In this document: positions 35,415-64,000 of the stretch, in pieces
How the letters are laid out: every line of letters starts with the position of its first letter
How positions within the stretch are numbered: the first letter of the stretch is position 1
From: Pecten maximus
Taxonomy: Eukaryota
Assembly (NCBI RefSeq): GCF_902652985.1
Contig: NC_047031.1
Location: 13,702,001 to 13,766,000, forward strand
Direction of reading: 5' to 3'
Length of the DNA: 64,000 bases
Notes under the pieces: model-generated
Database searches by the model: none
Seen by the model: the letters and a program-made list of their open reading frames with translations, nothing else
Told to the model about the DNA's origin: nothing
Made by a program: the position numbers and the translations under genes

Positions 35415-37551
35415 ATGGCCGCCAAGTGCGATTTGCCTTCTTGGTGGAAATCACTTTCCTTCGTGCCTCTGATTTCCGAGACAGTTATCGATGGATGGGC
35501 CTCAGAACTGAAAGTCCCGGCAAAATCGAAAAAGAGAGGATATAGCAATTTTGCTGAAGGATACGTCCATGACATTGAAGGTGTGTTTAATTTATCGAAT
35601 TCACAATATCAATGCATGATATTGGCGAAATTTAACTGTTAGTTATCGATACAGTATTCTGAAATTATCTTGGACTGAAAAATATTCATGAATGGAAATT
35701 TAATTTTAAAGATCATGAATACTTCAAACATCATTTCTTCATTTATTTTTTTGTACCACTATGACTCATATCAGCTCTTTTTCTATCGGATATGATTTTA
35801 CCGACTGATACACGAGGCCTGTCAAAATTAAATTGTATCTCGCTGTGTAAAACCTCTATCATTGTTGGAGTAATGTATCCTGTAGACAATAGTCATATTG
35901 ATGTTGTTAGACTGTAACTTATCCCATTTCTCCTTGCATTTATGTTTTTCTCCTTTCTTTTCCTTTTGCTAGACAAAATTAGTATAATCATTATTTTAAT
36001 TGTTGTATTTTTTTTCCAAATAAAATGGAGAAATTACCATTCGTTATTATCATTTTTAATCATCAATCATCACCATCTGACATCCATCATCATGGATCAT
36101 CCTTGGTCATTTTCATCATCAACAAATGGATCATCATATGGATCATCATCATCATCATCACCATCATCACCATCATCATCATCATCATCAATCATATCAG
36201 ACAAGATTTTTTTTGTGCCATTTCAGTGAGACCATTATCTACAGGATTGGGGTGTGACATCAAAGCAAAGTGTTTTCCTTCCATGAAGAAAAATGATCCC
36301 CCACATGTATTGCATCTGTCCTTGAAGTCAAATATATCTGTTGTAAATTGTAACTGTACATGCAAGGCAGGTTCAGGCCAATGTAGTCACATTCTTGGTT
36401 TACTATATACTGTAAATCATTATCAAAAACTTGATTTGAAAACTGTACCATGTGTTATTTCTAAAACATCAATGCCTCAAACATGGCACATTCCCCAGCG
36501 GATGCAAGGTGTCAAGCCACAGGCTGTTGATGACATAAGAGTTCAAAAAATTTCAAATTTCAAAAGAAAAAGAACAGATGGTGTCAAATCTAAATTTTAT
36601 TGTCCAGTTCAACAACCACTTCCATTCAAGAACATTGTAACAAATCTTAACACACAACTTCAATCAACCAATGTTCAGCTGAAAACTATATTACCAGTTA
36701 CTACAGATGATATTGAAACAGTTGACACAAAGGTTGGAGCTGTACCTAAAGGATCAATTCTGTCATATCAACAAAAAATATCTCAAGACAGCACAAGTAT
36801 CATAAATCATACAGATTATCAAACATATCCAGACTATGAAATGCCAGATAATACTAGTAATTTTGAGGTAGTTTTACAAATGGGTGAGCAAAATGTTTAC
36901 GATGGATTAAAAGTAACATTATCGGAGAGTATTGATGTAGAAAGAAACACTTTAGAACAATCAAAAAACCCTTCCTGGAAAAATGCGCGCAAAAACCGAT
37001 TAACGTCATCAGTTTTTAAACGTGTCTGCTCGAGAAAAAAAGAATACAACACCCTTGCTGATAACTTGATCAAAGGAAATAAAGTGCAAACAGCTGCTAT
37101 GAAATTCGGCATTGAACATGAGCAGGAAGCTGCTGATTTCTATGGTACAATTACAGGAAACAATGTGTACCATGCTGGATTATTGATAAATCCTTCCTGT
37201 TGGCATTTGGGCACATCACCAGACAGGAAAGTTATTGATCCATCTGTGTTACCCATGCATGGACTTTTAGAAATTAAATGCCCAAATGCAGATTCGATAA
37301 CAGATCTTAAGTACTTATGTTTGGTAGACAATTCTGGTACATACAAACTGAAGACCACACATGACTACTTTTATCAAATTATGGGCCAAATGGGCCTCAC
37401 AGGTGTGCAGTGGTGTGATTTATTTATAATGTGTAGAAATGACTACCATTTAGAGAGGATTAACTTCAATCCAGAAAAGTGGCATGAAATGAAGCAGACA
37501 TTAGACATGTTCTATTTCAACTACTATTTGCCAAAGTGTGTCAAACACTGA
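35415..37551 (+). CDS. SWIM zinc finger plus YqaJ/lambda-exonuclease-like nuclease of ISL2EU, about 496 aa
   Basis: Exons 35415-35580 and 36227-37551 (phase 1). SWIM: CNCTCKAGSGQCSH. YqaJ motifs: W..ARKNRLTSS, AAMKFGIEHE, GTSPD, LEIKCP, YFYQIMGQM. Confidence 0.9.
36060..36190. repeat. (CAT)n microsatellite in the YqaJ gene intron
   Basis: Directly visible; it explains the poly-Ile and poly-Ser ORF extensions. Confidence 0.9.
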
Positions 37552-38235: not shown

Positions 38236-41200
38236 CTAAAATAACTTTCCTTGAAAATTTGTAAGTAAGCAACAAATGGTCCAAATCTGATTCACAGTGC
38301 CAGCAATGGACAAAGGTACAACTTGATCAAAAATATGGTATTCTTTACATCTTCTTATTGCTCTCTCAACATGTATTCTTAATCTTGCTATTTGTTGTGT
38401 TTTACTGACTTCTTCTTTACTAAATTTACCTTTACTTCCTAGAAATGGAGGGATAACTAGTTTTGCACTAATTGGATCTAATAAATCCTGTATTAAAAAA
38501 CCTTTGTCTGCCATAACTTCATCGCCTGCCTCTATCAAATCTAGAATTCCACTACGTTGAGTGATGTCTTTATCAGATATGTTGCCAGTGTATAATCTAC
38601 TAACAAAACAAACAGCTCCATTTGGAGTAATACCAATAAGTCCTTTGAAGGTAGTATGCGACTTGTAATTTGAATATGTTTGTGAATTTAAAACTTTAGC
38701 ACTGGGAGTTTGAACACGAATTTCTGTACAATCCAAAATTACTTTTGTATCAGGAAAAGTACTCTTAAAACAGTCTGGCAAATTTTTTCTAACCATATCT
38801 CTTGTCGGCCAGATAGGTATACAACCTAAAATACAATACAAGTAATTACTCCAAGTTATAATAATACGACTAACAGTGCTCTGAGACACACAAAAACGTT
38901 GTGCTAGATCTTCCTCAAAAAAGCCTTGTCTAATTCGACATAAAAACATGAAAAATTGATCTACAAATGACAAAGATTCAATTCTAAATGGATTACTACT
39001 GATGTTACTATTCCTTTGAATTTGAGTCCATCTGATCATGTTGGAGGCTGTTGGCTCAATCACTTTATATATTGAACAAAAGATTTCATATGTAGGAAAG
39101 CCTGTATAAAAATTAATTAGATCAGGATTTGTAGAGAACTTTTCTACGCCAAACTTTTCCACCTTTCTCTCCAGCTCCAGAATCCTCTTTTGAAGTGCAC
39201 CAATATGATTCTTCATTTCCTGAAATAATGTAAAATCAAGAAATCAGTAGCAGTTCCTTAATTACTTTTTTTTTATTACAAGCATCAATGAAAAAATCAG
39301 TTGTTGGTATCATAGTAAGTTTATATAACAGCAATTTTTGATAAATTACCATCTGACAGGTAAATGTGAATTACCATCAGGTATTATATGTGAAATTTAT
39401 CATCAGGTAATTGTTAATTAACATCAGGTAAATGTGAAAAACATCAAGTTTTATCTGGTGTCCTGATATTGTAAACCCGTAACAAATCATTTTACCTCAA
39501 TATCTTCTTCTGGGGATGGCTTTTCAGTGCAGTAGTCATGCTCAAGATAAGGTGCTGGATTTGTTACTGTGGATGTCATTGTGGTAATCATTCTCTTGGG
39601 CATATTTTCATCACTACAAAGGAAAACATATAACTGCTGTGTTGTTGTTTTTTTTATTCTATCTTATTTTTATAAACATGCAAAGAAAATGCAAATCTAA
39701 TTGAATTGAACAAATAAAGCAAAAGATAAGTCAGCATATATATAAGGCATCTATTTTGCCAACTATTAGTATTTTTATAAAAAACAATTAAACCTCATTA
39801 TCTTTAACTTCCTAAAATTGAAGACATATATTTTGTCAGTTCTATCACAAATTCACACCGGACATTTTAGCTCATTTAACCTTGAATACTCTGATTTTTT
39901 CAACAGCATCGCCAGCTTCAAACCAGGGATATTCCTACAATTTTCCAACTGGGTCCATTGAATTGGGAATTTCTATGTGACAAAATGTGACATTGGGAAA
40001 TACAAACAGTAGTGAAATTCATACAAATGTCAGGGTTTTTTTAATGAATATTGCCTTTATATTATTTTTTAAATTCAATTTTTTTATAAATGTGTATGTT
40101 ACTGGTTTTTGTTTTTCAAAATTGCCTTAATATAGTTTTTTGTATATAAAACATACTTAATCATTCAACAGTGACTTCAAGTTCAAAATTGGGAATTAAA
40201 AAATGTCAGTGGCAAATTTTGAATTTTCAAAAGATTTTTTTAGGGGAATGAGTCCTTTTAACGGACCCTGTTTCTATTGTAGGAAAATCCCTGCAAACTA
40301 ATTAAGTTTGACTATATAGTTACCATATGATTGACACAATTTTCAATTCAACCACATTGAAAACTAGAGTAATTATAGATAAGAAACAGAAACAAAACAC
40401 TAGTTTTGAAGTATTTGCAGCTGAAATTACATAGATGTAGCACAAATATCATGGACAATACTTGTCAATATGCATATGTCAACTTTTGACTTATTCATCA
40501 CTTCTGTATACATTCATGAATTGCAATAGTAGAGTTCAAACCTGTTGATAGGCGCTAGTCTTTTTCGAGGTGATTTTCTTGGCACTGTGTCATGTGACCA
40601 ATCAAATGTACAAGGTATTGTCCCTTTTTTTAATTTCCGCAACCCTGAAAACAAATAAATTCTATTAATGTGATAGCAATAATAAACCAAGATTTTCCAA
40701 GATTTTTTTTATATTCACTCAGACACATTTAAAATGTATGATAAGAGGTCATACATATTTTTATAATTTACTTTTTATTCAGTGTTTTCATCAAAAAATG
40801 TACAATACATAACTTTCTCACACATACACACACATTCACACATTCACACACCCACACACACACATACTAAGGCTTGTATACACTCAATCAATTAAATTTA
40901 CTAAATTTGTATAAATCAAAGATATTCAAAATTACTGTAATTAATCATTTATCACATACACACATTTATACACACACACACACACAACATACACACATAC
41001 ATATGTCCCACTCAAACATTAAATGCAGAGAAAACTAAATAATCAAGATTTCTGTACTGTCATACATATTACATAGTTCAAATATATGACAGGCAATACC
41101 ATATACATACTGTACATGTATACAGATATACAAAAAAGTATACATACACTATTATAATTGCATCCAGCTCTAATATAAAGCATGCAGTAGTAGTAACATT

Positions 41201-45214: not shown

Positions 45215-48200
45215 TCATTGAAACTTTTTCATCCTTAGATTAAAATAATCCAGAACTGGATTAATTGGAGTGACTAGTGCGGACCCGGTGTTATCGACTG
45301 CTACTAGTACGCCGATTGAGACCAAAGATTTGTCCTCTAATCGTTGGAACACTGCCCCACCGGAATCGCCACGTTGAGCTAAAGGGGGAAGTTTGCAATC
45401 CGGTTCACCACATTGGCTGTTGTCTATAAAATGCATGCCCCGATATCTTTCATTTGCTTCTGTCCGCCCACATACTTTGTCTGTGAATTGGACGCTAGAA
45501 CTGTTTCGATATTTACCAATGGTCGGACCTGAGACACCTCCAAATATAATGGTATTATTGCCAGCTGTATGGTCTTTGCGTTTGTCATTGTCTGACTTTT
45601 CGCGTTCGGCTTCTTCCGAGACAGATGTTGGGTGTTTGTCTGCCTCTGGGTCACATGTCGGATTTCCTTTCTTTCCGGTGTCGAATGTTGGTTCCATGTC
45701 GGGATAACCTGCAACACATTAAGGATATTGCCATTACTCTCCGTGTTACTTGTAAATTGTTTGATTTTATACCCAGTGGTCATCTTGATAAGGCTTAATC
45801 TGTATTTGACCTAGATTTGTATAACGGGCGTCGGGACCTAGATTTGTATGACAGTAGTCGTCGTGACTTAGATCGGTATGGCCGATGTCGTTGTGACCTA
45901 GATTTGTATGGCGGGCGCCGTCATTGAAGCCCAAGGCGCTTACTCTATCGGTACACTTAAATAACGTTATTATTTTTCTCTGCTATTTTGGTTACGAAAA
46001 GTGACACTTGTTTAACAAAATGCAAATTTATATTGTTTTTAAAACAATGCTTTCGAAATTCAACATTGTCCCAATTATCTGTTTTTATTGCTGTCACCTC
46101 ATTGTTCATATGTTTCCCAACATTAATTCATGCAGATATTGAACGGTTACTACTTCTGATTACAATGATTGCCTTCCTTATATGCGCGATGCATGAGCGT
46201 GGTATGTTAGTGTTACATGTTTCGGGAGGCTGCAGTATATGTGTCTTTATCTCCTTGTGATAATTTTATGTCTGGTAAATTGGTACGACTAAAAAGAATA
46301 CTTACCAATTTTTTTGAACTGATGTTTTTCATATGCAGTAAATAGGCCCTGCTGAGGTTTTCTCTCTTTTTTGGTAATTTCCACAACGGCGATGTCTATC
46401 GATGTGTCCCTTTCAATGGCGTAGTCCCATTTTATCACTCGTCCGCACACCAGATCCACGTCTTGTTGGTTAGCGCCTGGACCATTTCCAGGCTGTAGCA
46501 TCAGGCGCTCACTACAACCGCGAGCATATACCTCCTCGACTCTTGTCCCTCCATATTTAGTATCAGAGAGTACATGTTCTTGTGAACTTCTGTTGGTTTT
46601 GGCCTTCTGTTGACACTCTTCTTTCGAGAACATCACATGTGCAGCTACAAGGCCACATAATCTGTTTTCATATTCCACAAATGGCCCTAAGGTTCCAAAC
46701 CGTGCTGTTCCGTCATTGGTTCGTATTGTGCATCCCATTTTCAATGGTACATGTTTGGCCAAAGGATTATCATCTCCTACAAGCCGAAAGTAACCTTCTC
46801 GAACATCAACAGGGACATATTGTCCGTCAACTAGGATTGAAGTCGGAAAATCAAGCTCGTTTTCGGGTATAAATGTTTTAAAAAGACAAAGTATCACGAC
46901 GCACGGTTGCCGCAGAAATTGCCCTTTACTATATTTGACCGGCGAAGACATGATTCCCCTGATGTTGGAATGCCTGTTCCACAATTTATCACAATCTTGT
47001 TTTATAGCTTTGTCAATCAGCACTTTTTCATCTTCCGATAAGAAATAGTCATTCTCGTGACAATGATGCAATACCACCCTTCCTTCATCTATTCCATCTT
47101 TTTCACAAATTTCTGGATCGCGAAACAGAACCCTGTAACCTGCTATACTTGTCTCCGCGCCGTGTGTCTTGGTTGTGCTGAAAACGACAAACACATTTTT
47201 CGCGTTGTGTTCACTTGGGTCTCGTAATCTGCCGAAAGCGACATGCTTGGGCTTGTGCTCGTGAGATAATTTCCCTCTAATGCCTCTAATTATAGCCTCA
47301 TTAGTCTTGCCTAAACTACTCTTAAGACATTTATCAATAATATAATTGTCTGTGTATTTAACCAGCATAGGGAGAACCTGATAATTGTCAAGATAAAACG
47401 CTAGTTCCATTGATGTAAACAGTTGTGGCAAACGTTTTTGAATGTCAGGAGGTATTTCGGCGCTTCCATTACTCGCCTGTTTCATGACATCTGCGCCATT
47501 GTTGTTTTCAATCATGCTTAAAAATGTTACTGGATCCTTGATCCCGTTTAATATATATTTGTGAAGAGAGGTCAACGGCAAAGAGGTATCAGGAAGTGGG
47601 CCTGTAACAGAAAATGTTCCCTTGATACGTTAAATCATCTCTAGATTTGTTTTTGGAAACAATCATTGTCATTCACCTCCTACACGTTCAATAAGATCCT
47701 TCTTCATTTCCCTTGTTTTCGATTTGAGAACGTGACATTATTTACATTTTCTATACTGATATTTGTCTTAGGATCTAGTGATTAAATTTGAATATGCCAT
47801 TTGTTTTCATTTTAGTTTTAAAAATCTTTTTAAATGTACATTAATTATTTCGTATATAATATATATATATATTCTGTTGTAAGTATGTAGTCTAAGTAAA
47901 AACATATCGTATCAAATAAGTAAAAACAAAATACATTTAAATTGAATTGAAAATTAAAATAGGTACTGTCAAATAGGGCATATATAACTATAATTATTGA
48001 TATTTTCATTACATTATATTGTAATCATTACTCAATTTCACCAATTTGTTGTTTGTTTTCATCAATAAAGATATTAAACTTCATGGTATGATTTTTTAAT
48101 TATATCATGTACTGTCACCATTATTTCCTTACATGTCATCAATACCTAGTTTGTTTTCCATGGTATATGGTGGTATTGGTATTGGATTATTATTGTCGTT

Positions 48201-49640
48201 TTATGAAGTTTTAGCATTATCTTATATGCTTTGTTCATGATTAATGGTGATGGTGTTCGAATTGTAATTGTTACACAATTCCGTCATTATACAATTAACA
48301 ACATCATTATATGATCACACAACTTCATAATGTCGTTGTACAACCTCTTTATGTTATTGTATAATTTCGTCATATATATTGAATGCGAATCTGACAATGT
48401 CTCCTACAATCATTATTAAACTGGCATTTTCACGGGGGTTACTTTTTTCTGTTAGGGACTATTCGCAACACAACTCCATGTACTGTTGTGCCAGTTCTCG
48501 TCAGTGACAAGGCAAAATTGAACCAAATGAAATATCACGTTTACCTTGGTTCACTAAAAAGTTTGTCGGAGCTATATCAATCATATAAAATGTTGTATAA
48601 TTATATAGCATATATTAAAATGTCGATTGATATAACCAGTTCACCGAATCATATAATATGATATAACTTAATAATATGACGGTACATTAAAGTAATTATT
48701 GATAAACCCAAATAAAAACACACTGATGACATCACAAAATATAATGATAAATTCAAATCAAATAATGAACAAAGCTTATAATATAATTAAACTAAATAAT
48801 ATGACGATAAATTTAAGTAATAAATTATAAAACTAAATTACGCAATGTAGGCATCATATCACATTAGGACACATTGAAATAATATTATAGTGACATCACA
48901 AATTAATGGCGAGTTCAAATCATACAATGAAATTCCTTGATATACTGAACATACAAATCCATATGGTATAGGAACAACCAACCAATTGAAAAAAATAGAC
49001 TTTTGAAACACCCCCTGTGTATAGAAAGTTTAGCATTCTCCATGCAATATTATGTGACAGCTATAGTGTTCCATAATTTAAGTCTGAATCAAAAATAATA
49101 TCGACAGTGTGTCCAAGGATATCATCAGGAAAGTTAATACGTGTACTCTTTTGAGAAGTAAAGTCAATAGTTAATTATAAAGTCTAGTGTGATACTCTGT
49201 ATTCAAAACGACTTACACTTACCTGTCAAGTAATATTCTATGTGCTTCACTAAAACATTGTTGTTTGTTTCCTTGGCTAGCTCCAGTACTGTTTTACCAG
49301 AAACTGTTTTTCCCTTCAGGTCAAATCCTACGGCTATTAACTTGTCAAATACCACCTTATCCCCACGGTTAGCGCACCAATGATGGAGAGCGTTAAATCC
49401 CTTTTGTTTGTCAGGTAACATTCCACTTTTGACACAATGCCGATGTTTTTCTAAAAGATGGAGCATCATTTTTTCATCAACAGAAATTGCAGCAGCATGA
49501 AGCACAGACGTTCCCCATCGCTTAGACCTATATGACACATCAATGCCACTTCTTACTACGGCGTCAAACTTGTCCACGTCCCCGCCGTGCGCATAGTTTA
49601 TCAAACTATCGCCCGTGTACCCGGGTGCAGCGCCCGCCAT
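45215..49640 (-). CDS. Ankyrin-repeat + NAL1-like trypsin-fold serine protease, paralog A, about 735 aa
   Basis: Exons 49640-49223, 47601-46306, 45708-45215 (2208 nt, phase 1/1 GT-AG), start context GCCATGG. ANK: GTSVLHAAA, GFNALHHWC, GKTVLELAK. Protease: FGTLGPFV, GLVAAHV (His), SIDIAVVEI (Asp), GGVSGPTIG, QRGDSGG (Ser). Confidence 0.88.
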
Positions 49641-52600
49641 GGCCTGAAAAGTAATGATATGGTTTTAGGTGCGAGAAATTCTACGTGTTCGTTTTGATTT
49701 TTGATATTGTATTACTTTTCCAGATAAAAGCTTGTGATTTTTGTAAGTTTCGAAAACAAAAACGTCATGTAAGAAAACAGTTATTGACCCGTTCTTAACT
49801 AAATACGAGAATTGATCAACAATTGTGAAAATAGGTCAATAATTGCTTATAACAAGTATCAATGATGGAAACGTTTTATTTTTCTGGGGATTATGGAAAT
49901 ATATTGTCTGTTATCTTTTTGCGGACCGCGGTTTCTTGTATAATCATACGTACGGGTACGTTTCAGGAAAATGAATGCAACCTACTTATATTTTGAATAT
50001 TAATGTATATATATAATTTTGAATGTGTGAGGTGAAAGGATATGGCCACTTACACTATGAAGTGTAACCAATTTGTGCGTCAAACCTTCACTGAAACAAT
50101 AGCCATTCTGATACATATGTCCCTGTATTTAGGGGTGTTGGTTTTGCTGGTAGTGGTTGTTTGTTTGGTTTTATTGTTCGACGACCTATCAATAGTTATT
50201 TTCACTATCTCCACTATGTGAGAGATGCATGCCTGTTGTGAATGAGTGTGTTTAGGAAGACGGTGATATGTTTATATTAAACTATTTGTGATATTTGTGA
50301 TAGCGCGGGGCTGATGCTGATTTAATAGTGCTATCTCTTGAAAGCATAATGTTCAGGAGGACATTTCACCCGGTCACATGTTACCGACTACCGGCGAACC
50401 AGTCGTCCTATGTGTTCAGCTTTATTCAAGAATTGTTACTACCGTTTAATAGTCTCTGGCTAAGGGGCAAAACCCAAAGCCTCTATCTCAGGGGCGAACG
50501 CCCAACTAAAAGGCCTAAAAAGTGCGATGTTATTACACAGGAAATTTGACCCATATCCTTTCATGTATTAATGAGTATGGTAATCAAACCTGCTCTGCTA
50601 TTTCTAGTATCTATTGAAATAATGAGTAAAACCTGAATGTCTGATTATAATGTTTATATCATGACAATTTGATAATATATTTGTTTTGTAAGTGTGTGTT
50701 AAGTTATATCGTTCACGTCTTGTTAATCTACATACCATCTAAAAGAAATCAATTCGTCTTACACAAACAAGCGTAACGAGGGTTGAAACGTTATTAAAGG
50801 AATACCTGTATCATTATGTCACAAGTAGATTGGCAAAAATACTTGCCGCGTCAGAATTTTCTCGTCTTTGAACCTATTATCTAAAGCTGAGGTAGTGACC
50901 TTTCCTTGTTGTATTTTCAGTGTGGATGATAATGTTATAGTATTTCCTACTTTCACTTTGTATATACTAAATATAACGAGTCGCATAATATACTGATGTA
51001 TATGTGGTATATTTAGATGATGTTGAATGTGTGTATGGATACATTATATGGTGTTTTTTTTGTTTTGTTTTTTGTGATGTTTTATATCATTCGATATATA
51101 GAATCATTAAGGGCCATCAGAAACAGAAATACATCAAAAAATCTGAAAATCACGCTGAGCATCTGACTGGTTGTTTTATCATTTAATGATAAAGAAAGAA
51201 GACTACGGTTTATAATTCAACAAATCACCAAAACAACATAAAGAAGAATATTATAGTATAAAAATGCCTGTTCAATCATATAATGATACAGGCCTATGAT
51301 ATTGACACTGCTGAACAAGTTAATAATTACCTACTTAATAACACAGCCACAAAACATTACCTATATATGTGAAACATTCATAGACATATGACACTTTACA
51401 CAAAAAAAAACGTAATTAGTAAATGTGGTTAAAATACTGTGGGCATTGCAGGTCAATTATCCGGTATAATAGAAACAAGGAATTGTGCTTACCACTTTCG
51501 AAGAGTATTACAAAAAAATAATAGACTTCTCTGGTAAATGATACATACTATATATGAGAAAATCGCCCTGCAAGATTTGGTTGTTGATCATGCAATCATG
51601 TGTTTTCTGTTTTGGTTTGTTAAGATACAATACACTGACTATAAAATCGTGTACATTTACCTGCACAGCACTTGAAATGGGGCGTTAAGTATGCATTTAC
51701 AAGTCTTACGACATAGTGTAAACAGATGATGTTTTCCTTCGCGACAGGACAGCAATACCACTGCTTCCTTGTTTAAACGCCCGAAATACGTCGACCTAAT
51801 TTCATTCCAGTGTATTTAGTTTCATTTTTAAAATACACCGACTAAGTTTAAAGATGAGTTTCGTTTTTGCATTGGATATAAAACTTTAATAAATCAAGAT
51901 TTACTATGATCTCCGACTGAAAAGATAAAAAATAAACTCATACCGGATTATGAAATCTAAAGTAAACAAAAGGCTGTTAAGTACCTAAGGTATGATCTAT
52001 ATATCAGTCGATTTGTCCTATTTCGGCCCCGCCGATTACCTTCCAGAGTCAAACGGGGCTAATATGTATATACAATATACACTCCAGCTGTCATCCAACA
52101 CTGATAATTCATAGTTTGTCTAAACCCTCCCCAGACGGAAACGTGATACCCAAAGGGTCATAGAATTTTAGTAATGTACCTTAGTACATTTCTATCTATG
52201 AGAAGTCAACTGGGGGGGATGGGTCTATACAAATCATCCGTTTGTTGATCTTAGGCTATGGAAGGTTTCTGTCAATTTCGATTCTAATCGGTTCAGCAGT
52301 TTTGGAGAAGCAGTCAAAAATGTAAAGTGATTACTAAAGGCCGAGGACGACGGACAAAAGGTGAATAGAATAGGTCACCTGACAGTTTGACAATTGTTTT
52401 TTCTCGTAAATAGTACAGCGCAGAGAATATGGATATCATTAAACGGGTTACAATAATGCATGGTAAAACAGGATGAGCATCACTCTTTTGAATTTATTAT
52501 CTAATTTGTATCAAAAATGAATTTTGACAATGAAATAAGTTAAATTGTGAGTTACACAATGGAATAAAGTACGAAGTTCAAATGTGTTTGGTCTTTTATA

Positions 52601-54714
52601 ATACACCTGAGATTATGTTGTCAGATGACCTTAAAACACATTCGACCAAAGTTAAAAACGGAAGGATGATAAACAATATCTTGCTCAAATATTGTCCAAT
52701 ATATCATTTTGTTTAAAACGATGTTACATTACACAATCTCCCAGGTGTAAACAATACATTGCTTGTCATTCTGATTTCCTGTGTAGTACTTAGAATACTA
52801 ACTATTTATTCAAAAATGGAATTGAAGGAAGAAGTTTACAAAAGAGTAGTGGTTCTTTCATTAACCTTTGTTTACATAGCAGACTTTAAGTGTTTGAAAT
52901 GACAGCAATCTTCATTGATAGGATATTATGTTGTGTTTTCCTACCCAATCTGATATTAACTGTATTTGAACCAGGGGATAACACCGATATCCAACTTTCG
53001 TTTCAGTAATTTCTTTCAGTTCCAAATTTCGGGTTTCCCATGTATACGTTGATAACATGAAAACTGGAGCAGTAATGGAATTTTACTTTCGTTTTGAATG
53101 GTAGATAACATAGTTTGTAACCTATCGCTGGAATTCCCCAAGTGTACGTAGTCCTGACAAAAGTGAGTATATTCATCTCGTAAAATATATATGTGGGTGA
53201 TACATGTCTAACCAATGATTCCTACCCAATTTGATGTTAACTACAATTGAACCCAATGATACATATGTCTACTTTCTTTTCGTTTCCAAATATCGGTATT
53301 TCCGAAAATACTTCAAAATATGAAAATTGAAGCAGTAATGAATTTTGAGATTCATCTCGGATGGCAAACAACTTAGTGTGTGTTTTTTTATTTATCTAAT
53401 TCTGGAATTCACAATGTATAACACTGGGCACCGCTGACAAGTCCTGGGATAGTTTTATACTAAATATTTGTGTTGTTTATTAATAATAATATAGCATGAT
53501 GCCGCTATTCACTTGTGTGTAGTTTGGACAATACTATTTCGCTTTATTTTTCTTGTACGTTAATGTCGTTAGCACGTTAGAGCATAACTGTTGTTACTTA
53601 TATTAACATACTTGCATCTAATTCTTAATGTCACGTCTAAAACTTATATAACAATATAAAAAAAATCATGCAAAAAAAAATGTTGTTACTACTATTAACA
53701 TACTTCTATCTGATGCTTAATGCCACGTCTAAAACTTATATAAGAATGTAAATAAAAATTATGCAAAAAAAAAAAAATTACAATTCTTTTAAATTCTAAA
53801 AGAAAAAAAAATACGAATAAATAAGTTAATAAAATCTTAGAATATACCGAACGGATAACGCATGCCAACCAACATCCTAGTACGATCCAAATATTATTTC
53901 TGTTATGATATTTTAGCTGTAGAAAACGACTGCGTTCGTGGGCAAATTAAATTAATTATTTGTGAAAAAGTTCACTGGAAAATCTTAATTACAAAAAATG
54001 TAGAGCAGATGCCTAAGGTTCTAATGTTAATTGAATACATTTTGATAATATATATACGCCTCCGCCTATCAAAGGTATTTTTATGCATTCCTACTACGGT
54101 CTGATTCTGTTATACAAAGCCATTATTGCCTAATGAAATAAACCTTTTTATTACACCAGTAAAATATCGAAAATTATTCATTCTGTAAAATGATATTTTT
54201 CAGTAATGATATTAGATATTTTAGTCTTGTCTTATAGGAAGATATAACAAAATGTAATACTGGTTTGAATGAAAGATAGGGAACTACTGCGTCCTCTGAA
54301 ATTTCGTCGTGTACGATATTTATATCCTCGTGAAATTTTAGGCTGATCTGACCTCCCCGATAGAGAATTTAAGTGACGAGTCGAACCTCCCATGAATATA
54401 CACGTACATAGGTATTTAACACTTTTCATTTTGGATCAACCTGCAATTGGCGAGGGTAATAAACGTACGTAATTTTCACAAACGACAGAGTGGTTCCCTA
54501 TCATCAACTTAACCATTATTACTTTCTATAACATATTTTTACTTTCCCTGGTAAGCGGGTCAATATCTTATCAATATAACTCACCCGCGCTACGTTGCTA
54601 TCAACATTATCAATAGAGAAGCATTAAATATATGTGAAATGTTTATAATTTTCTATCACAAATAACATTTAACAACATTTCATTGAGTGAATAAATGCTA
54701 CATACCCAGTGTAG

Positions 54715-55214
54715 NNNNNNNNNNNNNNNNNNNNNNNNNNNNNNNNNNNNNNNNNNNNNNNNNNNNNNNNNNNNNNNNNNNNNNNNNNNNNNNNNNNNNN
54801 NNNNNNNNNNNNNNNNNNNNNNNNNNNNNNNNNNNNNNNNNNNNNNNNNNNNNNNNNNNNNNNNNNNNNNNNNNNNNNNNNNNNNNNNNNNNNNNNNNNN
54901 NNNNNNNNNNNNNNNNNNNNNNNNNNNNNNNNNNNNNNNNNNNNNNNNNNNNNNNNNNNNNNNNNNNNNNNNNNNNNNNNNNNNNNNNNNNNNNNNNNNN
55001 NNNNNNNNNNNNNNNNNNNNNNNNNNNNNNNNNNNNNNNNNNNNNNNNNNNNNNNNNNNNNNNNNNNNNNNNNNNNNNNNNNNNNNNNNNNNNNNNNNNN
55101 NNNNNNNNNNNNNNNNNNNNNNNNNNNNNNNNNNNNNNNNNNNNNNNNNNNNNNNNNNNNNNNNNNNNNNNNNNNNNNNNNNNNNNNNNNNNNNNNNNNN
55201 NNNNNNNNNNNNNN
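54715..55214. other. Assembly gap, 500 N
   Basis: Run of N. Confidence 1.
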
Positions 55215-55249
55215 TGCCCCATCCCCAAAAAATTTAAAAAAGAGGTCCC

Positions 55250-55488
55250 CCGAAAACACTTTAAACGGAATCCGGATGAAAGACATGGATATATATTAAC
55301 TTACATAACTCATACGTGCATACCATCCCCAATAAAAGCGTGAAAACACTTTAACTGGAGACCGGATGAAAGACATGGATATATATTAACTTACATAACT
55401 CATACGTGCATGCCACCCCCGTCAAGAAGCGTGAAAACACTTTAAACGGAATCCGGATTGAAGACATGGATATATATTAACTTACATA
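55250..55488. repeat. About 90-bp tandem repeat, about 2.7 copies, next to the gap
   Basis: 'gaaaacacttta...gacatggatatatattaacttacata' at about 55252, 55342 and 55433. Confidence 0.85.
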
Positions 55489-56645
55489 TTTGTATATTCT
55501 ATCGACAACCTAACTTATTATAAACATTAAATTCCGTAATTGACTGCCGTTCTCCATTGTCGATCACATTCTGATTCTAAACAACGTTTTTTGGTTATAA
55601 CTAATGAAGCTTTCCACAAAGTGCTGTCATTTGTAACGAGCTTTCTATTGGAATCCTGGATAAATTTAGATATCATTTCAGTAATGACCGTGTTGTAAAA
55701 TTTTTAATACGTTGGAATATAATAATTATCACATATACATGTACATGTTTGTTTGTTAAAGCTGTTTCTGCTTCTACTGTTTACAATTCGATTATATTCA
55801 ATTATATTCATTTTATTCTCTTTCCATATACTGACATGATGTATAGAGAAAAAACATATTTACAATATAATATATACAATAAAAGTAGTGTTCGTAGTTG
55901 ACACACGGCACTGTTTCACAACAAAACATTTTCTTTTTAATCAAGGAGGGCAGCTCATGTTATTAATCAATCTAATAAAAATACGCATTTTCATTAATTT
56001 TTTAACATAAGTTATATTAATCAGTTCGTTAAACTTATAATATTTGGTCTTGATCAAAAGTATTTGTCTATAAATAAAATCCTGTGAGCTATTAACGCTG
56101 TACATTCAAGTAAATAATGAAATTCATCATCAATTTACGATTATTTAGTGAAAGGTTCGACATTCCTGTTTCATCTCACACGGACACTTAATATAAAGAA
56201 CGTTGATAAAGGCACAAAGACAAAATCTTTTGTTACACCCGGGTTCAAAATATCATATTCAAATAAAAATTTCCACTCCAATGTACATGTGTACTGCTGC
56301 GTGTACCATTAGCTAATTAAACAAGAAATATCTAAGTTGAACGGCGTAACAGTTTGATAATTTCCAGGAGAGTGATGTCCGGGTATAATTCAGGTAGTAC
56401 ATACATGTACTATTATTTAAATCCTAGTTCCACTTAGAAGTCTGCCGTCGGATAAGGAAATCAGCTTGGTAAAACCTAGGGTTTTCTCAGATGCATATAT
56501 GCAGCTATATTTAGAGGCCACGAAATCTACCCGTGACGAATCTATTAAAAAGCCAAGTCATTCATCGTGCCGTTGGGACGGGGTAGAAAATGATTCACAG
56601 TACAAGGGCCTGTCATAGTCTACTGCCTTTTTCATACATACCAAT

Positions 56646-56665
56646 GCGTTGGGAATTCCCAACGC
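56646..56665. promoter_or_regulatory. Perfect 20-bp palindrome containing the kappaB consensus GGGAATTCCC
   Basis: gcgttgggaattcccaacgc is its own reverse complement. Function is unproven. Confidence 0.35.
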
Positions 56666-59044
56666 TGACAGCCTTTAAATGTTTATAACGTTCAATATGA
56701 GTTATCTATGATGAGTGGAATGGATAGAAAATTTCATTTTTATACTTTGCCATGCCAGTTTAAAAACTGCCCTAACAAAACTTAATTTATATGAATTATA
56801 TGTTATTTTATCATTATATAAAGCATACTTCCTGAGGCTTTTGCATTGATTCACACTTCCTCTGGGTAATAAACAAATCGAAATTTAATTAGGATTTAAT
56901 CAATGGGTTGATATGTTACTGTTTATACAGAATCCCATAGGCCATGTTCATATACGGACATGTAAATGAATGTGTCTAGTACTGTCGAGATGTTAACAAA
57001 AAATCACATTGTTATTTCTCTTGATTTTAATTTTTATATCTCGGCTTCATTAACAATCCCGGAATATGTAATACGCCCATCCCTGTGTTAGAGGAAATGA
57101 TACTATAGACAATAATTAAAGAAGATTTAAATAATACTAGTGTTTATATCTAATAACATGTTGAGCTTAAAGGCTCGTGTTACACATGACCAATATATGT
57201 TTAGGATATACAATGTTTATTACAATGATAATAAATGTGCTTGCCGTTGTAGTGTATTTTATCCATATATTTCGCTGGCGTTACGCTCTAATGACACCCG
57301 AACAGCACAGGTGTATTAAGTAATATCACAAACACTCCTATGACAGCACACACGTACCTCGCGTCTGTATTAACGTCAGTATGTAGGCTAGGTATATACA
57401 GTGAACAGCGATACCCGTCAAACATTTCTCCCCCAGGCCACCCACCAGGTGGCAATGAACACTAACACATCACAGCATATTCAAAACGCACTGCACGATT
57501 GCCATTTATATATAAAATGTCATCAATCATAATTTTCTTCATACACTCTAATAATATTTAATACACATAAACTTCCTTCTATATTTCATTAAACACTGAT
57601 CAGTATTTTCTAATTTATTGTAAATACATGTATTACATCAATATTCCCCATAACCCATACAACTATTTTTGCGCCATAGTGACAAAATGCCCATATACTA
57701 TACAAACACATTTTATAAGCCCCAAAAAGAAAAACATTTTTTTTTCTTTTTCCTTCTGTCGTCGCCCAGCGCGCTGCCTGAACTGATACTCTGCGGTGTA
57801 CACGGGTACAACCCCGTGTGTCACACCACCCAGCGGAATACCCGTGGGAGAAAGTAATTTCGTGCTAATTCATTTCATTCAAACGCGCGAAATATGATTT
57901 ACTATTTTCTCTAGACGAGACTAAAATGAGATATGTATCTAGACATAAAACGAATTCTTTATAGGTAGTCGGTATAGCTAATATATATATAACGCATATT
58001 CTTTGTGTTCTGTGCAAACAAAAATATATATTCTGCTGCCATTGTTACATTTCATAGATTTCCTTCTGTGCTTTGTTTACTTAATCTTGGACTCTACCCG
58101 ACACCCGTCCTCGTAGGACCCTGGCTGTTGCAAGGACGTGAACAAAAACAAGAAAAGGGATTTGTTTACATCCATTCTCACAAGATCCTGACTGTTGTGG
58201 GGACGTTAACAAAATCAAAACAAGACAAACAAAGGGAGAAACGAGGTAGACAACGACGTTAACAGCAAAGATGTTATCAGCCAGCATGAAGTCCTCCACG
58301 TTGTCCTCGTGTAGATGACATTTTGTGATTAACGGTGCTATCCACATGCATGTCTTGATAAATGTTGTGATACATCAGATTTCATTCGGTATCAAGTTTT
58401 AAATAAAAATCTGACGTTCTTACTTGGTCCGCCATCCTTCTTTTAGTAAGTAAAACAAAACACATGTTTTTGTTGGAAAATGAAAAGTTTAAGAACAACA
58501 AATCAAAACAAAAATAAAAATCAACAAGAAACAACAATAATTTCTGCAGGCATTATTGACAAAGCCACGATGTCACATATTGCAGGTGAATTGTTTACGT
58601 TAACACAGCATTCACAAAATTTTCTCGAATTTTTACAATAAATCACAATTTATTTCTGAAAGGTATATGATGTTTTTTCTTCAATTGACACTCTGGTACC
58701 GACCTAACTACTTCAATATATATCTTCTTTGAAATGCAAAGTTAGACATAAATGCATGAAATATTTACATATCAAAAAAATGTCTTAGCTAATCATTGGT
58801 TTTTACACATCCTGGTTCAGGGGTTTAACAAAGGAATACTTTCATATATCTGTAACACAGTCTTGTTTCGTTCCCTGTGTTCTGGTCTGGCAATATTGAT
58901 ATATTCTTACTGCTTTTCCGTGTCTGTTTGAATCGAGGACTGGCTTGTATAAAAAAGAAGCATTACATTATTTGTGTAAAATATTTGAGTTAATTAAATG
59001 ATTATAATAGTCAAATACGATTGGCAGGTAAATGATGGTGTGAT

Positions 59045-59145
59045 TTGGTTTGGTTTTATTTGTTTAACGTCCTATTAACAGCTAAGGTCATTTAAGGACG
59101 CCCCCATGCGTGCGATATGTATGGGTGTGATGAATGCGTATGTGT
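59045..59145 (-). mobile_element. SINE 3' fragment, same family as 720-1078
   Basis: ttggtttggttttatttgtttaacgtcctattaacagctaaggtcatttaaggacg. Confidence 0.75.
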
Positions 59146-59868
59146 AAAATGATGGTGTGATACAACAAAATATAAATCTGTACATGATGGTGTGTTTTTT
59201 CCTTTTTAAAAAAATTATATATGTATGTTTATTTCTTTGCTATTTTGGTAAACTATTTAATAAGTATATATATGAAATACTATATAGTATTACTTCAAAC
59301 AGAATGCGCCACTAAATTACTATGTATATAAAAGGACATATAATTGCTATATATGCCATTCATCACTACAATATATACACAATAAGCCCCTAATATATTA
59401 TACAATTGTATATACATTAAGCACCTTATCTATATTATACACAATAAGCCCCTAATTTATTATTTATACAATATGCTCCTTATTAATCGTATATACAATA
59501 TGTATCTAATTAACTATACAATAGGCATATATACATGTAGAATTCAAACAACGAGGTTAACAGCTCCTTAGAGATCGACCACGCCTCCAAGTACACGTTT
59601 ATAACGCGGCTATTCACAGATGATACGTGGTTATATTTGATACAAAATAATTCGCCCTGTCTCTCCTTGTACAATAAAATTAGTCCATACCTCGAGGTGA
59701 ATTATACAAAATCCTAAATCTTATTTAAATATATACATAACATTACGATTGGGTCTATTTTCCCATTTAGCTGCACACTGGAACATTTTCTTGCATTAAA
59801 TGATAATATTACTTGTATCAGGATAAATTTCCATTTTTTGCATCCTTATTGAAATTTTGAAATCAGAG

Positions 59869-62800
59869 TTATGTTCGCGGTCGGAATACCTTTAAATTGC
59901 ACCCAGATGTTTCTAACACTGGTTTGATCGGGATCACAATTCCGGATCCAGTGGCTTCGTCTGCTCCCACCAAGATCCCGACACAGATGAGAGAGTTGTC
60001 CCTTATCTGGAACACTCCTGCGCCCGAATCACCATGAGTCGAAAATGGCGGTAGATGACAATCATCCTCCGAGCACTGTCGATTCTCTATATAGTAAATT
60101 CCTCTCCAACGCTCTGTCTCTGAAACTCTTCCGTATATCCTGGAATTGAATTCTGCGGTTTCGATGCCTCGGTAAGTGCCATAGGTCACACCGGATGCAC
60201 TCCCGAACTTGATAATCTTTTCCCCTACAATAGGTTCACCATATTCGCCATGGTCGAATATTGGTTGGTTCTCTGGAATTCCTGAAACAAAATGAATTCA
60301 GAGACAATGAAGGTTATGTATTTTACTAAAATAATTGAGAGTCGATTGAATAATTATTGCTACGGATGGAAAGAAGTAATGTTTTGATTTTTTATATCGT
60401 ACGGTACGACGGCTGATTGATAAAACGAACATACTCGAGTACGAGGCTCACAACCCTTGTACATCGTCACTTTCAGTTATCGGCTCCAACGCTAAAAAGG
60501 GTACAGTTCAAATAAAAAAATCTGTAATGAATTTTTACAAGTATCAATTACAATTGAAATGGCTGCAAAATAATCAAAACCTATTTTGAAAATACTATAT
60601 GAATGCCACAGAAAATAATTAAATGAAAGATTTAAGAAAACATGAATAATATAGAACCTTGTTCAGAGAGTTGTCCCTGACTAAATGCAGCAAACCCCGG
60701 TGACAGTGGCGCCCTCGCTGGAACCGTGATCTCAACAATAGCGATATCTATGGACGTAGCTTCATTCAGGCTGTACTTCAGATAAACTACTTCACCACAT
60801 ATCCGGTCATCCTCCGGATACCCTGTGTTCCCAGTGCTCGGTTGCAGGACAGGTATATCAGGTACACTGTCCTCAACATAAGTCACGGGGCCATTAACGA
60901 CGTGTGCACACGTGATGAAACCAATCTTGCCATCTTGCAGTTCTACAAACGGACCAATGCTTCCGAACCTGTTGAATACATATACATATGTAGAAATGAG
61001 TTACATTGTATCTATGTGTAGAAAACAATAGATCGGAATATGCCTTTGAAAGACATACCACCACCACCTACATCAACAACATCAACAACAAAAATAAAAA
61101 CAACAAAAAAACAGTAAAGGACAAATTATGAGTCGGATGTTATAACATGTTCTCGAGAATCTCATTTATACTGGAAGCCATTGTGGCCAGCAAATATATA
61201 ACCAATACTCGCCTCAACGTTGGGTCGTCCGCAGTTCCGATGTTGCATCCAAAACTGAGGGGTTGATGTAGAGCGTTAGGACTCTGTACGTGATGTAGGA
61301 CAACATGTCCCTCTCTAACATCTACAGGAAGTGTGTCATTCCCGACCTTTAGTTCCGGCGGAAATGCCGGCTCCTTGTCGGGAACGAACCCCTTGAAGTG
61401 GCATAAAATAACCAAACATGTTTGTTTCTTGAATGAGCCTCCGACGGATTTTACCGGCGATGACAAAATGCCTCGCAAATTTGAATGATTTTTCCAGAGT
61501 TTGTCGCTGTGTTGTTTGATCGCTCTGGCTACTAATATTCTGTCATCTTCTGACAAGATGTAGTTGTTCTGTTGGCAGTGATATAACGCTTTTCGACTCT
61601 CGTCGCTGGAGACAGATGGATTTCGGAACTGTACCGGGTAACCGGCCTTGTTTGTTTCACTGCCATGTGCGATGACGTCCGTGTATATTACAAACATTTT
61701 CTGTTTCTTTGGCTTGTATTCTCCAAACACGACCTCGATGAATTTATCTTTATATTGCTTTTCAAGCATCCCCTTGACGATATATGGCTTTAAAGTTACG
61801 TGCCCATTTTCACACATTGAAAGACACCGCCTAACAATGTCGTCATCAGTATATCGGATCAGAAGTGACGTCATTTCTTCTTTTCCTGAAAAGAAAGCTA
61901 CCTCCAATGGAGTAAGCAATTGTTTTGGTTTCAGATGAATGTCGGGGAAGAATGCGCTATTTATTTTCTTCATTGTGTTTGCTCCATTTTCAATCATGCG
62001 CAGCACATCATAAGACTTCCCCTCTGCTGCAGATCGATGCAGACCGATCCAGTTCCTGTGAATGACTTCCGGTGTCTTTTGATGGACTACGTCGTAAGAA
62101 TCTTCCTGTGTGTGTGTGAGCGTTAAGTCTCTACTATGTGGCGTCTCGTCGCCTTCAGGTGTATATTTGTCGGCCGCATCACTCATCCCAGATTCCGACG
62201 GAGAGCTGTCATGAGGTTTGTCAGCAGGTACAGAACTTCCGGGCTCACTAAAGTATCCAGACTCCATCATAGAAACTTAAACAATATAAAACAACATTAG
62301 ACATTGCAATAGGCACGTTGTTTTATATATGTACGGATACAAGTGTCGTGTAATGACGTCAGCACATGGAGCTGTTGAATAAAATGTTTCCAATTTTAGT
62401 CATCGTTACCTTTGCAAGGTATATAAAATGCTGAACATGGATATATTTTGCTACACTGCATATAATCCTTGTATAACACTGTTAAACATGTTTATTTACA
62501 TTCCATAGTACGTTTTATCACATAACTATCCCATTCTGCCATGTCACGCGGCCATGTCAGAAACATCGTAAGACACTAGTATAGACACATGCGTCATAAC
62601 ACTATTATGTCATATTAAATATGTGACGTCGTATGATTGTCTCGGTAGATGGAAACGTCCCATCCGAGCTGGATTTCGTTTGTCTTATTAAGAAAGGAAA
62701 ACTTTGTTTTGCTTATATTCTCATCAATAGTAGTTATGTGATAAACATAATCTTACACTCGTGACTATGCCATATGGAATTCATTAAACTCGCCTTAAGG

Positions 62801-63624
62801 CTTGAGGCATATAGAATTGTTGAACTCGTTTCGTGAATGTTAAATGACATAGCCACTCGTGTAAGATCCTTTATATATACCTCGTGTCTGACTTAAATAG
62901 CATACGATGTAAGCATGCTTTAAATACAACTTGCTTAAGGGACACACGCTTAATACGAATTTATGCTTACAGCGATGTAAACTCCCGAGCCTGTTCCAGC
63001 CATTGATATTTTAAGACCCTATTTATGGATCTTTGATAAAACTACATTATTCAAAATTATTACAAAATATGAGATACATATAAGTTATTGTTAAGTATAA
63101 TAAGGGGTAGATATGAGTTCTAGTTCAGTACAATAAGAGGTAGATATGAGTTCTAGTTAAGTACAATAAATGGGAAGATATGCTAACAATGATGATAATT
63201 TACCTTGTATGTATGAAGAATCAAGTTGGTCATTTCTCGCAAGATGGCGGACCATGTCTGTCTGTTTGGCCTCTCCTGCCAAGTCGAGGACGCTCCTTCC
63301 GTCTGCTGTTCTTGCCCTCAGGTCGACCCCAGTCTCAAGTAACTTATCAAACATCTCAATCTTACCCGATCGAGCGGCATGGTGTAGCGCATTATATCCT
63401 GCCGGGTCGAGAAACTGACCTTTGACATGGCACGCGGGATACTTCTCTATAAGATGACGTATCATTTCAGATTGTCCGTTACGTGCGGCAAAGTGCAATA
63501 CGGACGAGCCACTCGTGGTGGTAGAATCTACAGGAATACCATGTCTGACTATGGTGTCTAGTTCCTCCACGTCTCCTTTCTCGGCACTAGACAGTAAATC
63601 TACTATGGTATACTTTCTCTTTCC
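59869..63624 (-). CDS. Ankyrin-repeat + NAL1-like trypsin-fold serine protease, paralog B; start codon probably beyond the right edge
   Basis: Exons 63624-63204, 62275-61213 (GC donor), 60968-60658, 60281-59869 total 2208 nt and are open. ANK: GSSVLHFAA, GYNALHHAA, GRSVLDLA. Protease: FGSIGPFV, FITCAHV, SIDIAIVEI, KFGSASGVTYG, THGDSGA. Colinear with paralog A. Confidence 0.88.
62745..62875. mobile_element. Short palindromic element, probably a Crypton-like terminal hairpin remnant
   Basis: Inverted repeat atcttacactcgtgactatg ... catagccactcgtgtaagat. Confidence 0.45.
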
Positions 63625-63687
63625 CTGAAAATATCATAATGTCACAGTTTGTGTCCGTAAAAAGTTACGACAGTAGTGCAATAACAT

Positions 63688-63985
63688 GATAATAGTACGA
63701 TAATACTATGATAATATTACGATAATAGTACAATTATAGTACGATAATAGTACGATAATAGTACGATAATAGTATGATAATAGTACGATAATAGTATGAT
63801 AACAGTACGATAATAGTACGATAATCCGATATTAGTACGATAATACGATAATAGTACGATATTAGTACAATAATAGTACGATAATAGTATGATAATAGTA
63901 TGATAATAGTACGATAATAGTAAAATAATAGTACGATAATAGTACGATAATACAATAATAGTACGATAATAGTACGATAATAATA
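63688..63985. repeat. 11-bp minisatellite (gataatagtac)n
   Basis: Directly visible; it produces spurious YYYRTII ORFs. Confidence 0.95.
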
Positions 63986-64000
63986 CAATCAAAGAGAATG

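Follow-up and report, generated by a model that had tools for sequence, protein, structure and literature searches.

Introduction

In plants, NAL1 is known as a gene for yield and architecture, and its fold, in which an ATP-binding domain (ABD) is combined with a cage-forming serine protease, was solved only in 2023-2025. Here, we describe two neighbouring genes, A and B, of the king scallop Pecten maximus, the products of which combine ankyrin repeats with a protease core of the NAL1 type. They lie in a stretch of 64,000 nucleotides of a chromosome-level contig (C17:13702001-13766000; NC_047031.1 of GCF_902652985.1), which was analysed as a whole and is called the window. In NAL1, residues 89-172 make up the ABD and residues 184-458 the serine protease domain, with H234, D291 and S385 forming the catalytic triad, and the assembly of a hexameric cage is needed for the triad to become competent (PMC12012508). 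ATP-Mg is bound in rice NAL1 by the ABD loops (R120, R122, K123, K139 and D166).

Several other systems invite comparison. Ssy5, the intracellular chymotrypsin-fold signalling endoprotease of the yeast SPS sensor, belongs to the Peptidase_S64 family. The alpha-lytic protease/Streptogrisin group (MEROPS S1E; 2ALP, 5MRT and 3SGB) consists of secreted bacterial enzymes having pro-regions and neither an ABD-like domain nor ankyrins. The HtrA/Deg proteases and FAM111A are, like the scallop proteins, trypsin-fold serine proteases, and they act as oligomers inside cells or compartments. At the level of function, analogies are offered by the caspases on DED/CARD platforms, where a protease effector of a different catalytic fold is coupled to death-fold adaptors, and by the bacterial STAND/NTPase conflict systems with trypsin-like effectors (Kaur et al., eLife 2020, 2021; PMC7159879, PMC8195603).

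We consider it likely, for the locus as a whole, that A and B are two intact, anciently duplicated genes for intracellular ankyrin-NAL1-like proteases, and that their family is a proteolytic arm of immune or cell-death signalling.

Results

Two intact genes of common architecture

From the six-frame translation and the listing of open reading frames (ORFs), we observed two intact paralogs with long open frames within 45215-63633, both on the minus strand. A preliminary description, made from the sequence alone, had proposed two diverged tandem paralogs sharing one architecture. Both were indeed found in place, each carrying the motifs HSN, VDVREG, G(T/S)(L/I)GP, AAHV/CAHV, SIDIA and GDSG. The exon boundaries were taken from the sequence, the splicing rests on database gene models together with splice-site and phase logic, and the queries for the searches were exons or database proteins. 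The coding exons of the two genes, and the sole run of N in the window, are as follows.

49223-49643, minus strand: first coding exon of gene A; four ankyrin repeats (residues 1-140; Ank_2 E 1.4e-8), seen as four helix pairs in the AlphaFold model
46306-47601, minus strand: large exon of gene A; two ankyrin-like repeats with cap helices, beta subdomain, ABD-like middle domain (KLW..HSN...VDVREG) and protease N-terminal barrel, with the His in AAHV and the Asp in SIDIAVV
45215-45708, minus strand: last exon of gene A; disordered acidic insert, protease C-terminal barrel, FGGVSGPTIG and the Ser in GDSGG; stop codon at 45215-45217
54715-55214, no strand: assembly gap (N run), between the start of gene A and the end of gene B
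63204-63624, minus strand: second ankyrin block of gene B; four repeats (Ank_2 E 1.4e-26); begins at an acceptor, has no ATG and is not the first coding exon
61219-62275, minus strand: exon of gene B; low-complexity linker, ankyrin-like repeats, beta subdomain and ABD-like middle domain (KLW.NHSN...VDVREG); phase-2 donor at 61218
60658-60968, minus strand: exon of gene B; protease N-terminal barrel, with the His in TCAHV and the Asp in SIDIAIV; the preceding intron is missing in gene A
59869-60281, minus strand: last exon of gene B; protease C-terminal barrel, FGSASGVTYG and the Ser in GDSGAG; stop codon at 59869-59871

The three exons of gene A sum to 2205 nt (735 codons) and the four in-window exons of gene B to 2199 nt (733 codons), both exact multiples of three. 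All the introns follow the GT-AG rule, the phases and split codons are compatible, and the seven in-window exons are open. The ankyrin exons of A and B are each 421 nt long and each end in phase 1, and the extra intron of gene B lies inside the protease N-terminal barrel. The two products are about 41% identical. By region, identity is 41% for the ankyrin block and likewise for the middle domain, 42% for the C-terminal half of the protease and 30% for its N-terminal half. The Ank_2 scores, 35.6 bits for A and 93.3 bits for B against a Pfam cut-off of 27.3, place both among the ankyrin-repeat proteins.

The ATG of gene A is at 49640, only 3 nt past an AG acceptor, which implies that a 5'-untranslated (5'-UTR) exon lies upstream. 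The large exon is 100% identical to residues 1-402 of P0001, the NCBI model for the chromosome copy of gene A (LOC117315654, 567 aa), and the last exon is 100% identical to its residues 405-566; this last exon also matches the Trypsin family weakly (E 0.062). Gene B continues past the end of the window. Its first coding exon was found at L031:8780-9197 on the minus strand, i.e. ∼71780-72197 in window numbering and ∼8 kb past the window end; it encodes a further block of four ankyrin repeats, and its starting Met is preceded, two codons upstream, by an in-frame stop. The short linker exon (∼40 residues) between the two ankyrin blocks of gene B was not located. The N-terminal solenoid thus has four canonical repeats per exon of the 421-nt type, one such block in A and two in B, followed by two ankyrin-like repeats. 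The assignment of a single exon of about four repeats plus an ankyrin-like pair to each gene, as first made, therefore stands for A and had to be revised for B, where there are two blocks and the first lies outside the window.

The N gap is 5.07 kb away from the nearest coding exon of A and 4.65 kb from that of B, and a genome-wide family search gave no family match between the two genes, the gap interval included. Since the gap is intergenic and kilobases away from the exons, neither reading frame is interrupted by it; the only part that it could affect is the unlocated 5'-UTR exon of gene A. Tandem repeats of 90-92 bp occur on both sides of the gap.

Neither the gene models nor the sequence of either gene contains a signal peptide, the N-termini being hydrophilic ankyrin sequence, and an IVGG-type activation site is absent from both genes. 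On these two points we agree with the preliminary description, which had noted the missing signal peptide for gene A. That both products are soluble intracellular (cytosolic) ankyrin-NAL1-like serine proteases is well supported.

Joining of the ankyrin and protease exons, and conservation of the pair

The joining of the ankyrin exon to the protease exons, which was at first assumed from the sequence, is borne out by NCBI gene models, one from an allelic P. maximus contig and others from three further scallop genera. The second P. maximus model, P0157 (LOC117320121, 725 aa), lies on the 8.3-kb contig C2409. It has the same Met start, and its ankyrin exon is joined to the large exon between YLTG and PLPD, which is the junction inferred for gene A; its residues 1-140 are 91% identical to the ankyrin exon of gene A. 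Across exons and introns alike, C2409 and gene A are colinear, and their nucleotide sequences are 93-99% identical. The orthologs of A in Argopecten, Mizuhopecten and Ylistrum (P0002, P0003 and P0004; 714-738 aa) have the identical layout and start. For B, the Ylistrum ortholog P0026 (925 aa) contains two ankyrin blocks; the in-window exon 63204-63624 is 54% identical to its residues 184-332, exon 61219-62275 is 63% identical to residues 346-676, and the last exon is 74% identical to residues 784-923. The orthologs, intact across four scallop genera, are 50-74% identical.

The A-type and B-type genes also lie on one contig in Ylistrum, with consecutive LOC numbers, and in Mizuhopecten, so the duplication is older than the radiation of these scallops. 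The tandem synteny in these species rests on the common contigs and the adjacent LOC numbers.

Two small unplaced contigs carry colinear copies of the genes, introns included: C2409 of A and C3960 of B. They differ from the window genes at ∼7% of nucleotides, with a synonymous divergence (dS) of ∼0.1, and at up to 12% of residues in the large exon of A; they represent either very divergent haplotypes or a very recent segmental duplicate. The introns vary in their repeats as well. Those of gene B hold three copies of a 33-bp repeat and 28 of an 11-bp microsatellite, at 63078-63182 and 63688-63986; the 33-bp repeat region (∼105 bp) is present many times in a ∼3.4-kb part of C3960 (L033:640-3998). 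The last intron of gene A has a 30-bp repeat at 45807-45921 that is likewise expanded on C2409.

We compared the window genes with these two contigs by the Nei-Gojobori method. The ratio of nonsynonymous to synonymous divergence (dN/dS) ranged from 0.05 to 0.5, with the tightest constraint on the exons of the protease: of the four comparisons of protease-only exons, three gave 0.05-0.10, and the fourth (exon 4 of B), having zero synonymous differences, was undefined. Hence, the A/B pair is under purifying selection, and the idea of diversifying selection found no support.

The core is structurally closest to NAL1

The AlphaFold2 prediction for P0001, made with a 50-sequence family alignment, was confident, with a predicted local distance difference test (pLDDT) of 86.9 and a predicted template-modelling score (pTM) of 0.84. 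For the full-length P0157 these values were 86.7 and 0.72, with the following predicted layout.

Residues 10-139: four ankyrin helix pairs
Residues 151-253: two further ankyrin-like pairs and cap helices
Residues 257-321: four-stranded beta subdomain and a helix
Residues 327-411: long helix and beta sheet
Residues 429-720: two beta barrels

When the P0001 model was searched against the PDB with Foldseek, the top 34 matches were all rice NAL1 (E 3.5e-12 to 1e-7), followed by alpha-lytic protease (2.5e-7). VIA comparison of the Foldseek matches gave Z 24.3 for NAL1 (8pmg_B; root-mean-square deviation, rmsd, 4.0 A over 297 residues), with model residues 160-567 aligned to NAL1 90-447. This range covers both the ATP-binding domain and the protease domain of NAL1. 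An independent VIA search of 48,161 chains again placed NAL1 first (7y77_A, Z 23.4). The alpha-lytic-type proteases reached Z 15-18 and matched the protease domain alone, for which they are the best likeness (Z 18.3, rmsd 2.2 A, 186 residues), whereas the Deg/HtrA enzymes scored ∼12, FAM111A 10.3 and S1A enzymes ∼9-10.

The profile searches pointed in the same direction. A profile of 25 core sequences (A3) matched nine NAL1 sequences in the PDB with E 5.6e-9 to 2.5e-8, the next protein being at 0.07; the alpha-lytic/Streptogrisin proteases gave no significant match with it (E 0.08 or worse). A half-profile comprising the middle domain and the N-terminal half of the protease (A1) found NAL1 only, at E ∼0.5. 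A single-sequence search of the PDB (phmmer) gave no significant match, and NAL1 was thus seen only by profiles and structure. In the HMMER alignments, the invariant His of the family falls on NAL1 His234 and the Ser of GDSG on Ser385; the family Asp (S.D.A) was placed on D291 via structural superposition only, not residue by residue. The middle domain has invariant Lys, Asp and Glu residues. The suggestion that the middle domain and protease lie closer to NAL1 than to classical S1A trypsins is therefore upheld by Foldseek, by VIA (Z 24.3 versus 9-10) and by the profile (E 5.6e-9), and HtrA and FAM111, which had been named as alternatives, are not the best matches.

Compared with rice NAL1 (PDB 7Y77, 8HAS, 8HAU, 8PMG and 8PN2), the scallop proteins likewise have an alpha/beta domain equivalent to the ABD directly before the serine protease domain. 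The motifs GTLGxxV...GFLTxxHV, K.G..(S/T)G.T.G and GDSGS are common to both, neither has a signal peptide, and NAL1 is the sole significant sequence match in the PDB. They differ in that the scallop core is only ∼15% identical to NAL1, that the N-terminal domain of NAL1 (1-88) is replaced by ankyrin repeats and a small beta subdomain, and that the scallop host is an animal with at least 40 loci rather than a few. We conclude that the homology of the two-domain core to plant NAL1 is well supported, as a distant relationship lying outside the boundaries of the curated Pfam families.

The beta subdomain at residues 257-321 (window ∼47200-47010, in the large exon of A) is conserved and has no NAL1 counterpart in the alignments, which begin at NAL1 90. 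In the A-type proteins, a disordered acidic or Lys-rich insert (window 45560-45660; P0157 residues 584-610, pLDDT <50) sits just N-terminal of the FG..SG.T.G strand of the second barrel. All four scallop A orthologs have this insert and B lacks it; it could be a regulatory or cleavage loop.

Among the other families considered, Pfam recognised only ankyrin repeats in the exons, plus a sub-threshold trypsin match, and the Pfam scans found no PDZ domain. The classical S1A trypsins (PF00089) were rejected at 13.6 bits against a cut-off of 20.6, with hydrophilic ankyrin N-termini and S1A structures at Z 9-10. An HtrA/Deg or FAM111 identity was rejected too, with Z ∼12 and 10.3, well below NAL1, and with the scallop proteins lacking PDZ. 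Weak Peptidase_S64 matches recall Ssy5 in 2 of 50 relatives (E 1.2e-4, below threshold), but the window's own proteins gave none. Neighbouring clusters in the ESM-Atlas carry Nal1_C, NAL1_N and Peptidase_S64 and come from plants, bacteria, phages and a cnidarian set; we treat these as leads only.

The catalytic triad is conserved throughout the family

The His, Asp and Ser that the preliminary description had reported as intact are present in both genes (AAHV/CAHV, SIDIA and GDSG) and are conserved family-wide. In the P. maximus genome, all of 21 paralog exons retain both His and Asp. Among 50 relatives, His does not vary, and the conservation of Asp and Ser is 90% or higher. We also aligned 161 relatives to the hidden Markov model of the core. 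Ninety had the complete His-Asp-Ser set, 61 had His and Asp with the C-terminal half missing from the model, seven had Glu in place of Asp and three covered the His only; His or Ser was lost in none. The core is thus a trypsin-fold serine protease of the alpha-lytic type with a conserved His/Asp/Ser triad.

A large family with diverse fusion partners

A search with the profile of the middle domain and protease N-terminal half recovered 714 cluster representatives at E<=1e-3, 525 of them at E<=1e-10. All of the 30 named representatives that were looked up are called "uncharacterized" or "hypothetical". They come from bivalves (Pecten, Argopecten, Mizuhopecten, Ylistrum, Tegillarca, Mercenaria, Potamilus, Saccostrea and Ostrea) and from the brachiopod Lingula. 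The homolog search with A3 returned 11 proteins, namely eight close scallop relatives and three short fragments, distant taxa being out of its view. The preliminary description had also pointed to bacterial relatives; a scan of bacterial and archaeal genomes with A1 gave 93 matching patterns and no relative, so no bacterial or archaeal homolog of this particular family was found by this route.

In the P. maximus genome, the middle domain is matched at 47 places or more, of which three contain stop codons, and the family has no fewer than 40 loci there. A dense tandem array occupies C17 31.65-31.93 Mb, and clusters occur on C13, C10, C19 and C2. The stop codons in three of the array paralogs suggest birth-and-death turnover. 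Most array paralogs have one large exon spanning the middle domain and the N-terminal half of the protease.

A Pfam scan of 50 relatives and of individual proteins placed the core at the C-terminus, behind other modules:

Ankyrin arrays: 13 of 50 relatives
CARD, NACHT and NLRC4_HD2: P0079, Lingula
DED (47 bits, above cut-off): P0083, Mercenaria
Ankyrin and Roc-COR: P0013
Roc-COR: P0073
nSTAND3: P0120
HEPN_DZIP3: P0130
Ubiquitin-like, Ig, NHL and DUF4559: various relatives

By analogy with known systems, this is the pattern of an effector domain plugged into the recruitment and oligomerisation modules of cell-death and immune signalling. The likeness to caspase platforms and to bacterial STAND/NTPase effectors (cf. 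P0079 with CARD-NACHT, P0083 with DED and P0120 with nSTAND3) is one of function only, and the two window genes differ from those systems in carrying ankyrins rather than death-fold or NTPase domains. The literature searched held no specific description of animal NAL1-like proteases or of death-fold-linked serine proteases in bivalves. Consistent with what was first supposed, neither the database look-ups nor that literature yielded a characterised animal protein of the ankyrin-NAL1-like protease architecture.

Other elements in the window

Three further ORFs lie on the side of gene A. An intact 508-aa ORF at 36025-37551 (plus strand) combines a SWIM zinc finger with a YqaJ-type viral recombinase/alkaline exonuclease domain (E 2.3e-18) and is probably part of a mobile element. 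Beside it, at 38236-39216 (minus strand), is an intact 326-aa ORF for a PIF/Harbinger-type transposase (DDE_Tnp_4 E 1.1e-44, HTH_Tnp_4 E 5.9e-17). At 12619-13350 (plus strand), a 243-aa ORF has DUF3504 (E 1.3e-17) and a QRICH1-like region, as in domesticated or decaying tyrosine-recombinase elements.

Discussion

In the proteins described here, the ankyrin repeats would act as a module for binding partners or substrates, and the core would cleave the intracellular clients that are bound. Catalytic competence would probably depend on self-assembly of the core, as in NAL1. The requirement of NAL1 for a hexameric cage makes activation by induced proximity a natural hypothesis for the scallop family. 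On this scheme, the family would most likely contribute effector or regulator proteases to the innate-immune and cell-death signalling of bivalves, with the ankyrin proteins of the window as one flavour of recruitment.

The position of the core, C-terminal to DED, CARD-NACHT, Roc-COR, nSTAND3 and HEPN in the relatives, suggests that such a proteolytic arm is its most likely function, and we regard an immune or cell-death effector role of the window genes themselves as plausible by analogy. An innate-immune or cell-death module was already proposed in the preliminary description. The proposal has gained from these fusions and from the expansion of the family, and the role is still one that we infer.

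Several observations weigh against this interpretation. For the chromosome copy of gene A, the NCBI model leaves out the ankyrin exon, its first residue being an internal Met. The Pfam families defined on NAL1 do not recognise the scallop proteins: Nal1_C (PF25819, gathering cut-off 26.1 bits) had no match in the window exons, in P0001 or in the members of A1, except P0005 at E 0.031, and NAL1_N (PF25608) had none at E up to 10 in 21 middle-domain pieces and the full-length proteins. The best place for Nal1_C in the whole genome scored 23.6 bits, below that cut-off; among the 50 relatives four gave Nal1_C matches, with E down to 1e-5, and the best one seen individually (P0063) had 21.8 bits, likewise below it. 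Positive selection was not detected against C2409 and C3960, no Nei-Gojobori dN/dS value exceeding 1. Finally, the immune role is drawn solely from the domain association of paralogs and from the family expansion, and NAL1 itself is a developmental regulator, not an immune protein.

The last point leads to the most serious competing explanation. A and B could be NAL1-like regulatory proteases with housekeeping or developmental duties, the ankyrins recruiting nuclear or cytosolic regulators for degradation as NAL1 does with TPR2 and FZP in rice; there would be no immune link, and the fusions among paralogs would reflect domain shuffling. Besides the developmental role of the closest characterised relative, the age of the A/B pair and its conservation in four scallop genera (50-74% identity) fit such a role, and so does the purifying selection, unlike what is seen in many fast-turnover immune genes. 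Against this, the family has no fewer than 40 loci, arranged in tandem arrays and including pseudogenes, its core has been fused time and again to DED, CARD-NACHT, Roc-COR and nSTAND3, and the allelic contigs show ∼10% synonymous divergence. Arrays, fusions and allelic divergence are each typical of invertebrate immune and cell-death repertoires, not of single-copy housekeeping enzymes. We therefore judge the developmental explanation to be rather unlikely, though it deserves to be kept in mind.

It was also suggested at the outset that the ankyrin repeats gate the active site. The solenoid would cover the site until a ligand or partner displaces it, so that each protein would be a self-contained sensor-protease. 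Repeat domains do serve as autoinhibitory sensors in STAND and NLR proteins, and here the ankyrins and the core are contiguous in one polypeptide. However, the fall in pTM from 0.84 for the core to 0.72 for the full-length protein, at equal pLDDT, suggests that there is no confident fixed docking between them, and the exchange of ankyrins for adaptors (DED, CARD) in the relatives points to recruitment instead. Gating of this kind has so far found no support, and we hold it to be distinctly improbable. On the separate matter of self-association, a two-copy prediction of the core (160-567) scored 0.01 and carries no weight either way.

It is very improbable that A and B are copies in decay, or pseudoproteases serving as non-catalytic scaffolds, within an expanded family. 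Such a fate would accord with the three family loci having stop codons and with the truncated NCBI model of gene A, but all seven in-window exons are open with canonical splice sites, both genes have His, Asp and Ser, none of the 161 relatives has lost His or Ser, three of the four comparisons of protease-only exons give a dN/dS of 0.05-0.10, and the orthologs are intact in four genera. We give practically no credence to secreted or digestive S1A-type trypsins lying next to the ankyrin exons of another gene, to which the GDSG motif and the weak PF00089 match (E 0.062) might point, against the missing signal peptide and IVGG-type site, Z values of 9-10 for S1A structures versus 23-24 for NAL1, the joined ankyrin-protease models in four genera and the fitting exon phases.

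The favoured reading, in which A and B are intact intracellular ankyrin-NAL1-like proteases of a family acting in immune or cell-death signalling, may be extended in a more speculative direction, which we put forward tentatively and with more doubt than belief. The NAL1-like proteases may form an unrecognised class of death-fold- or STAND-coupled effectors in lophotrochozoan innate immunity. Such effectors would be a serine-protease counterpart of the caspases, with recruitment through an ankyrin, DED or CARD module or direct incorporation in an NLR or ROCO protein, and induced oligomerisation into a cage of the NAL1 type would activate them. Plant NAL1 would then be one branch of an ancient conflict-type module.

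Bivalves are noted for their expanded apoptosis and immune repertoires. In animals, the NAL1-type core occurs in a family of hundreds of genes, from bivalves and a brachiopod, and is set on ankyrin, DED, CARD, NACHT, Roc-COR and nSTAND3 modules. If the members of this family are active, bivalves would own a caspase-independent proteolytic arm that is currently annotated merely as "uncharacterized", and the scallop family would offer a testable model of how a NAL1-type cage is regulated by induced proximity.

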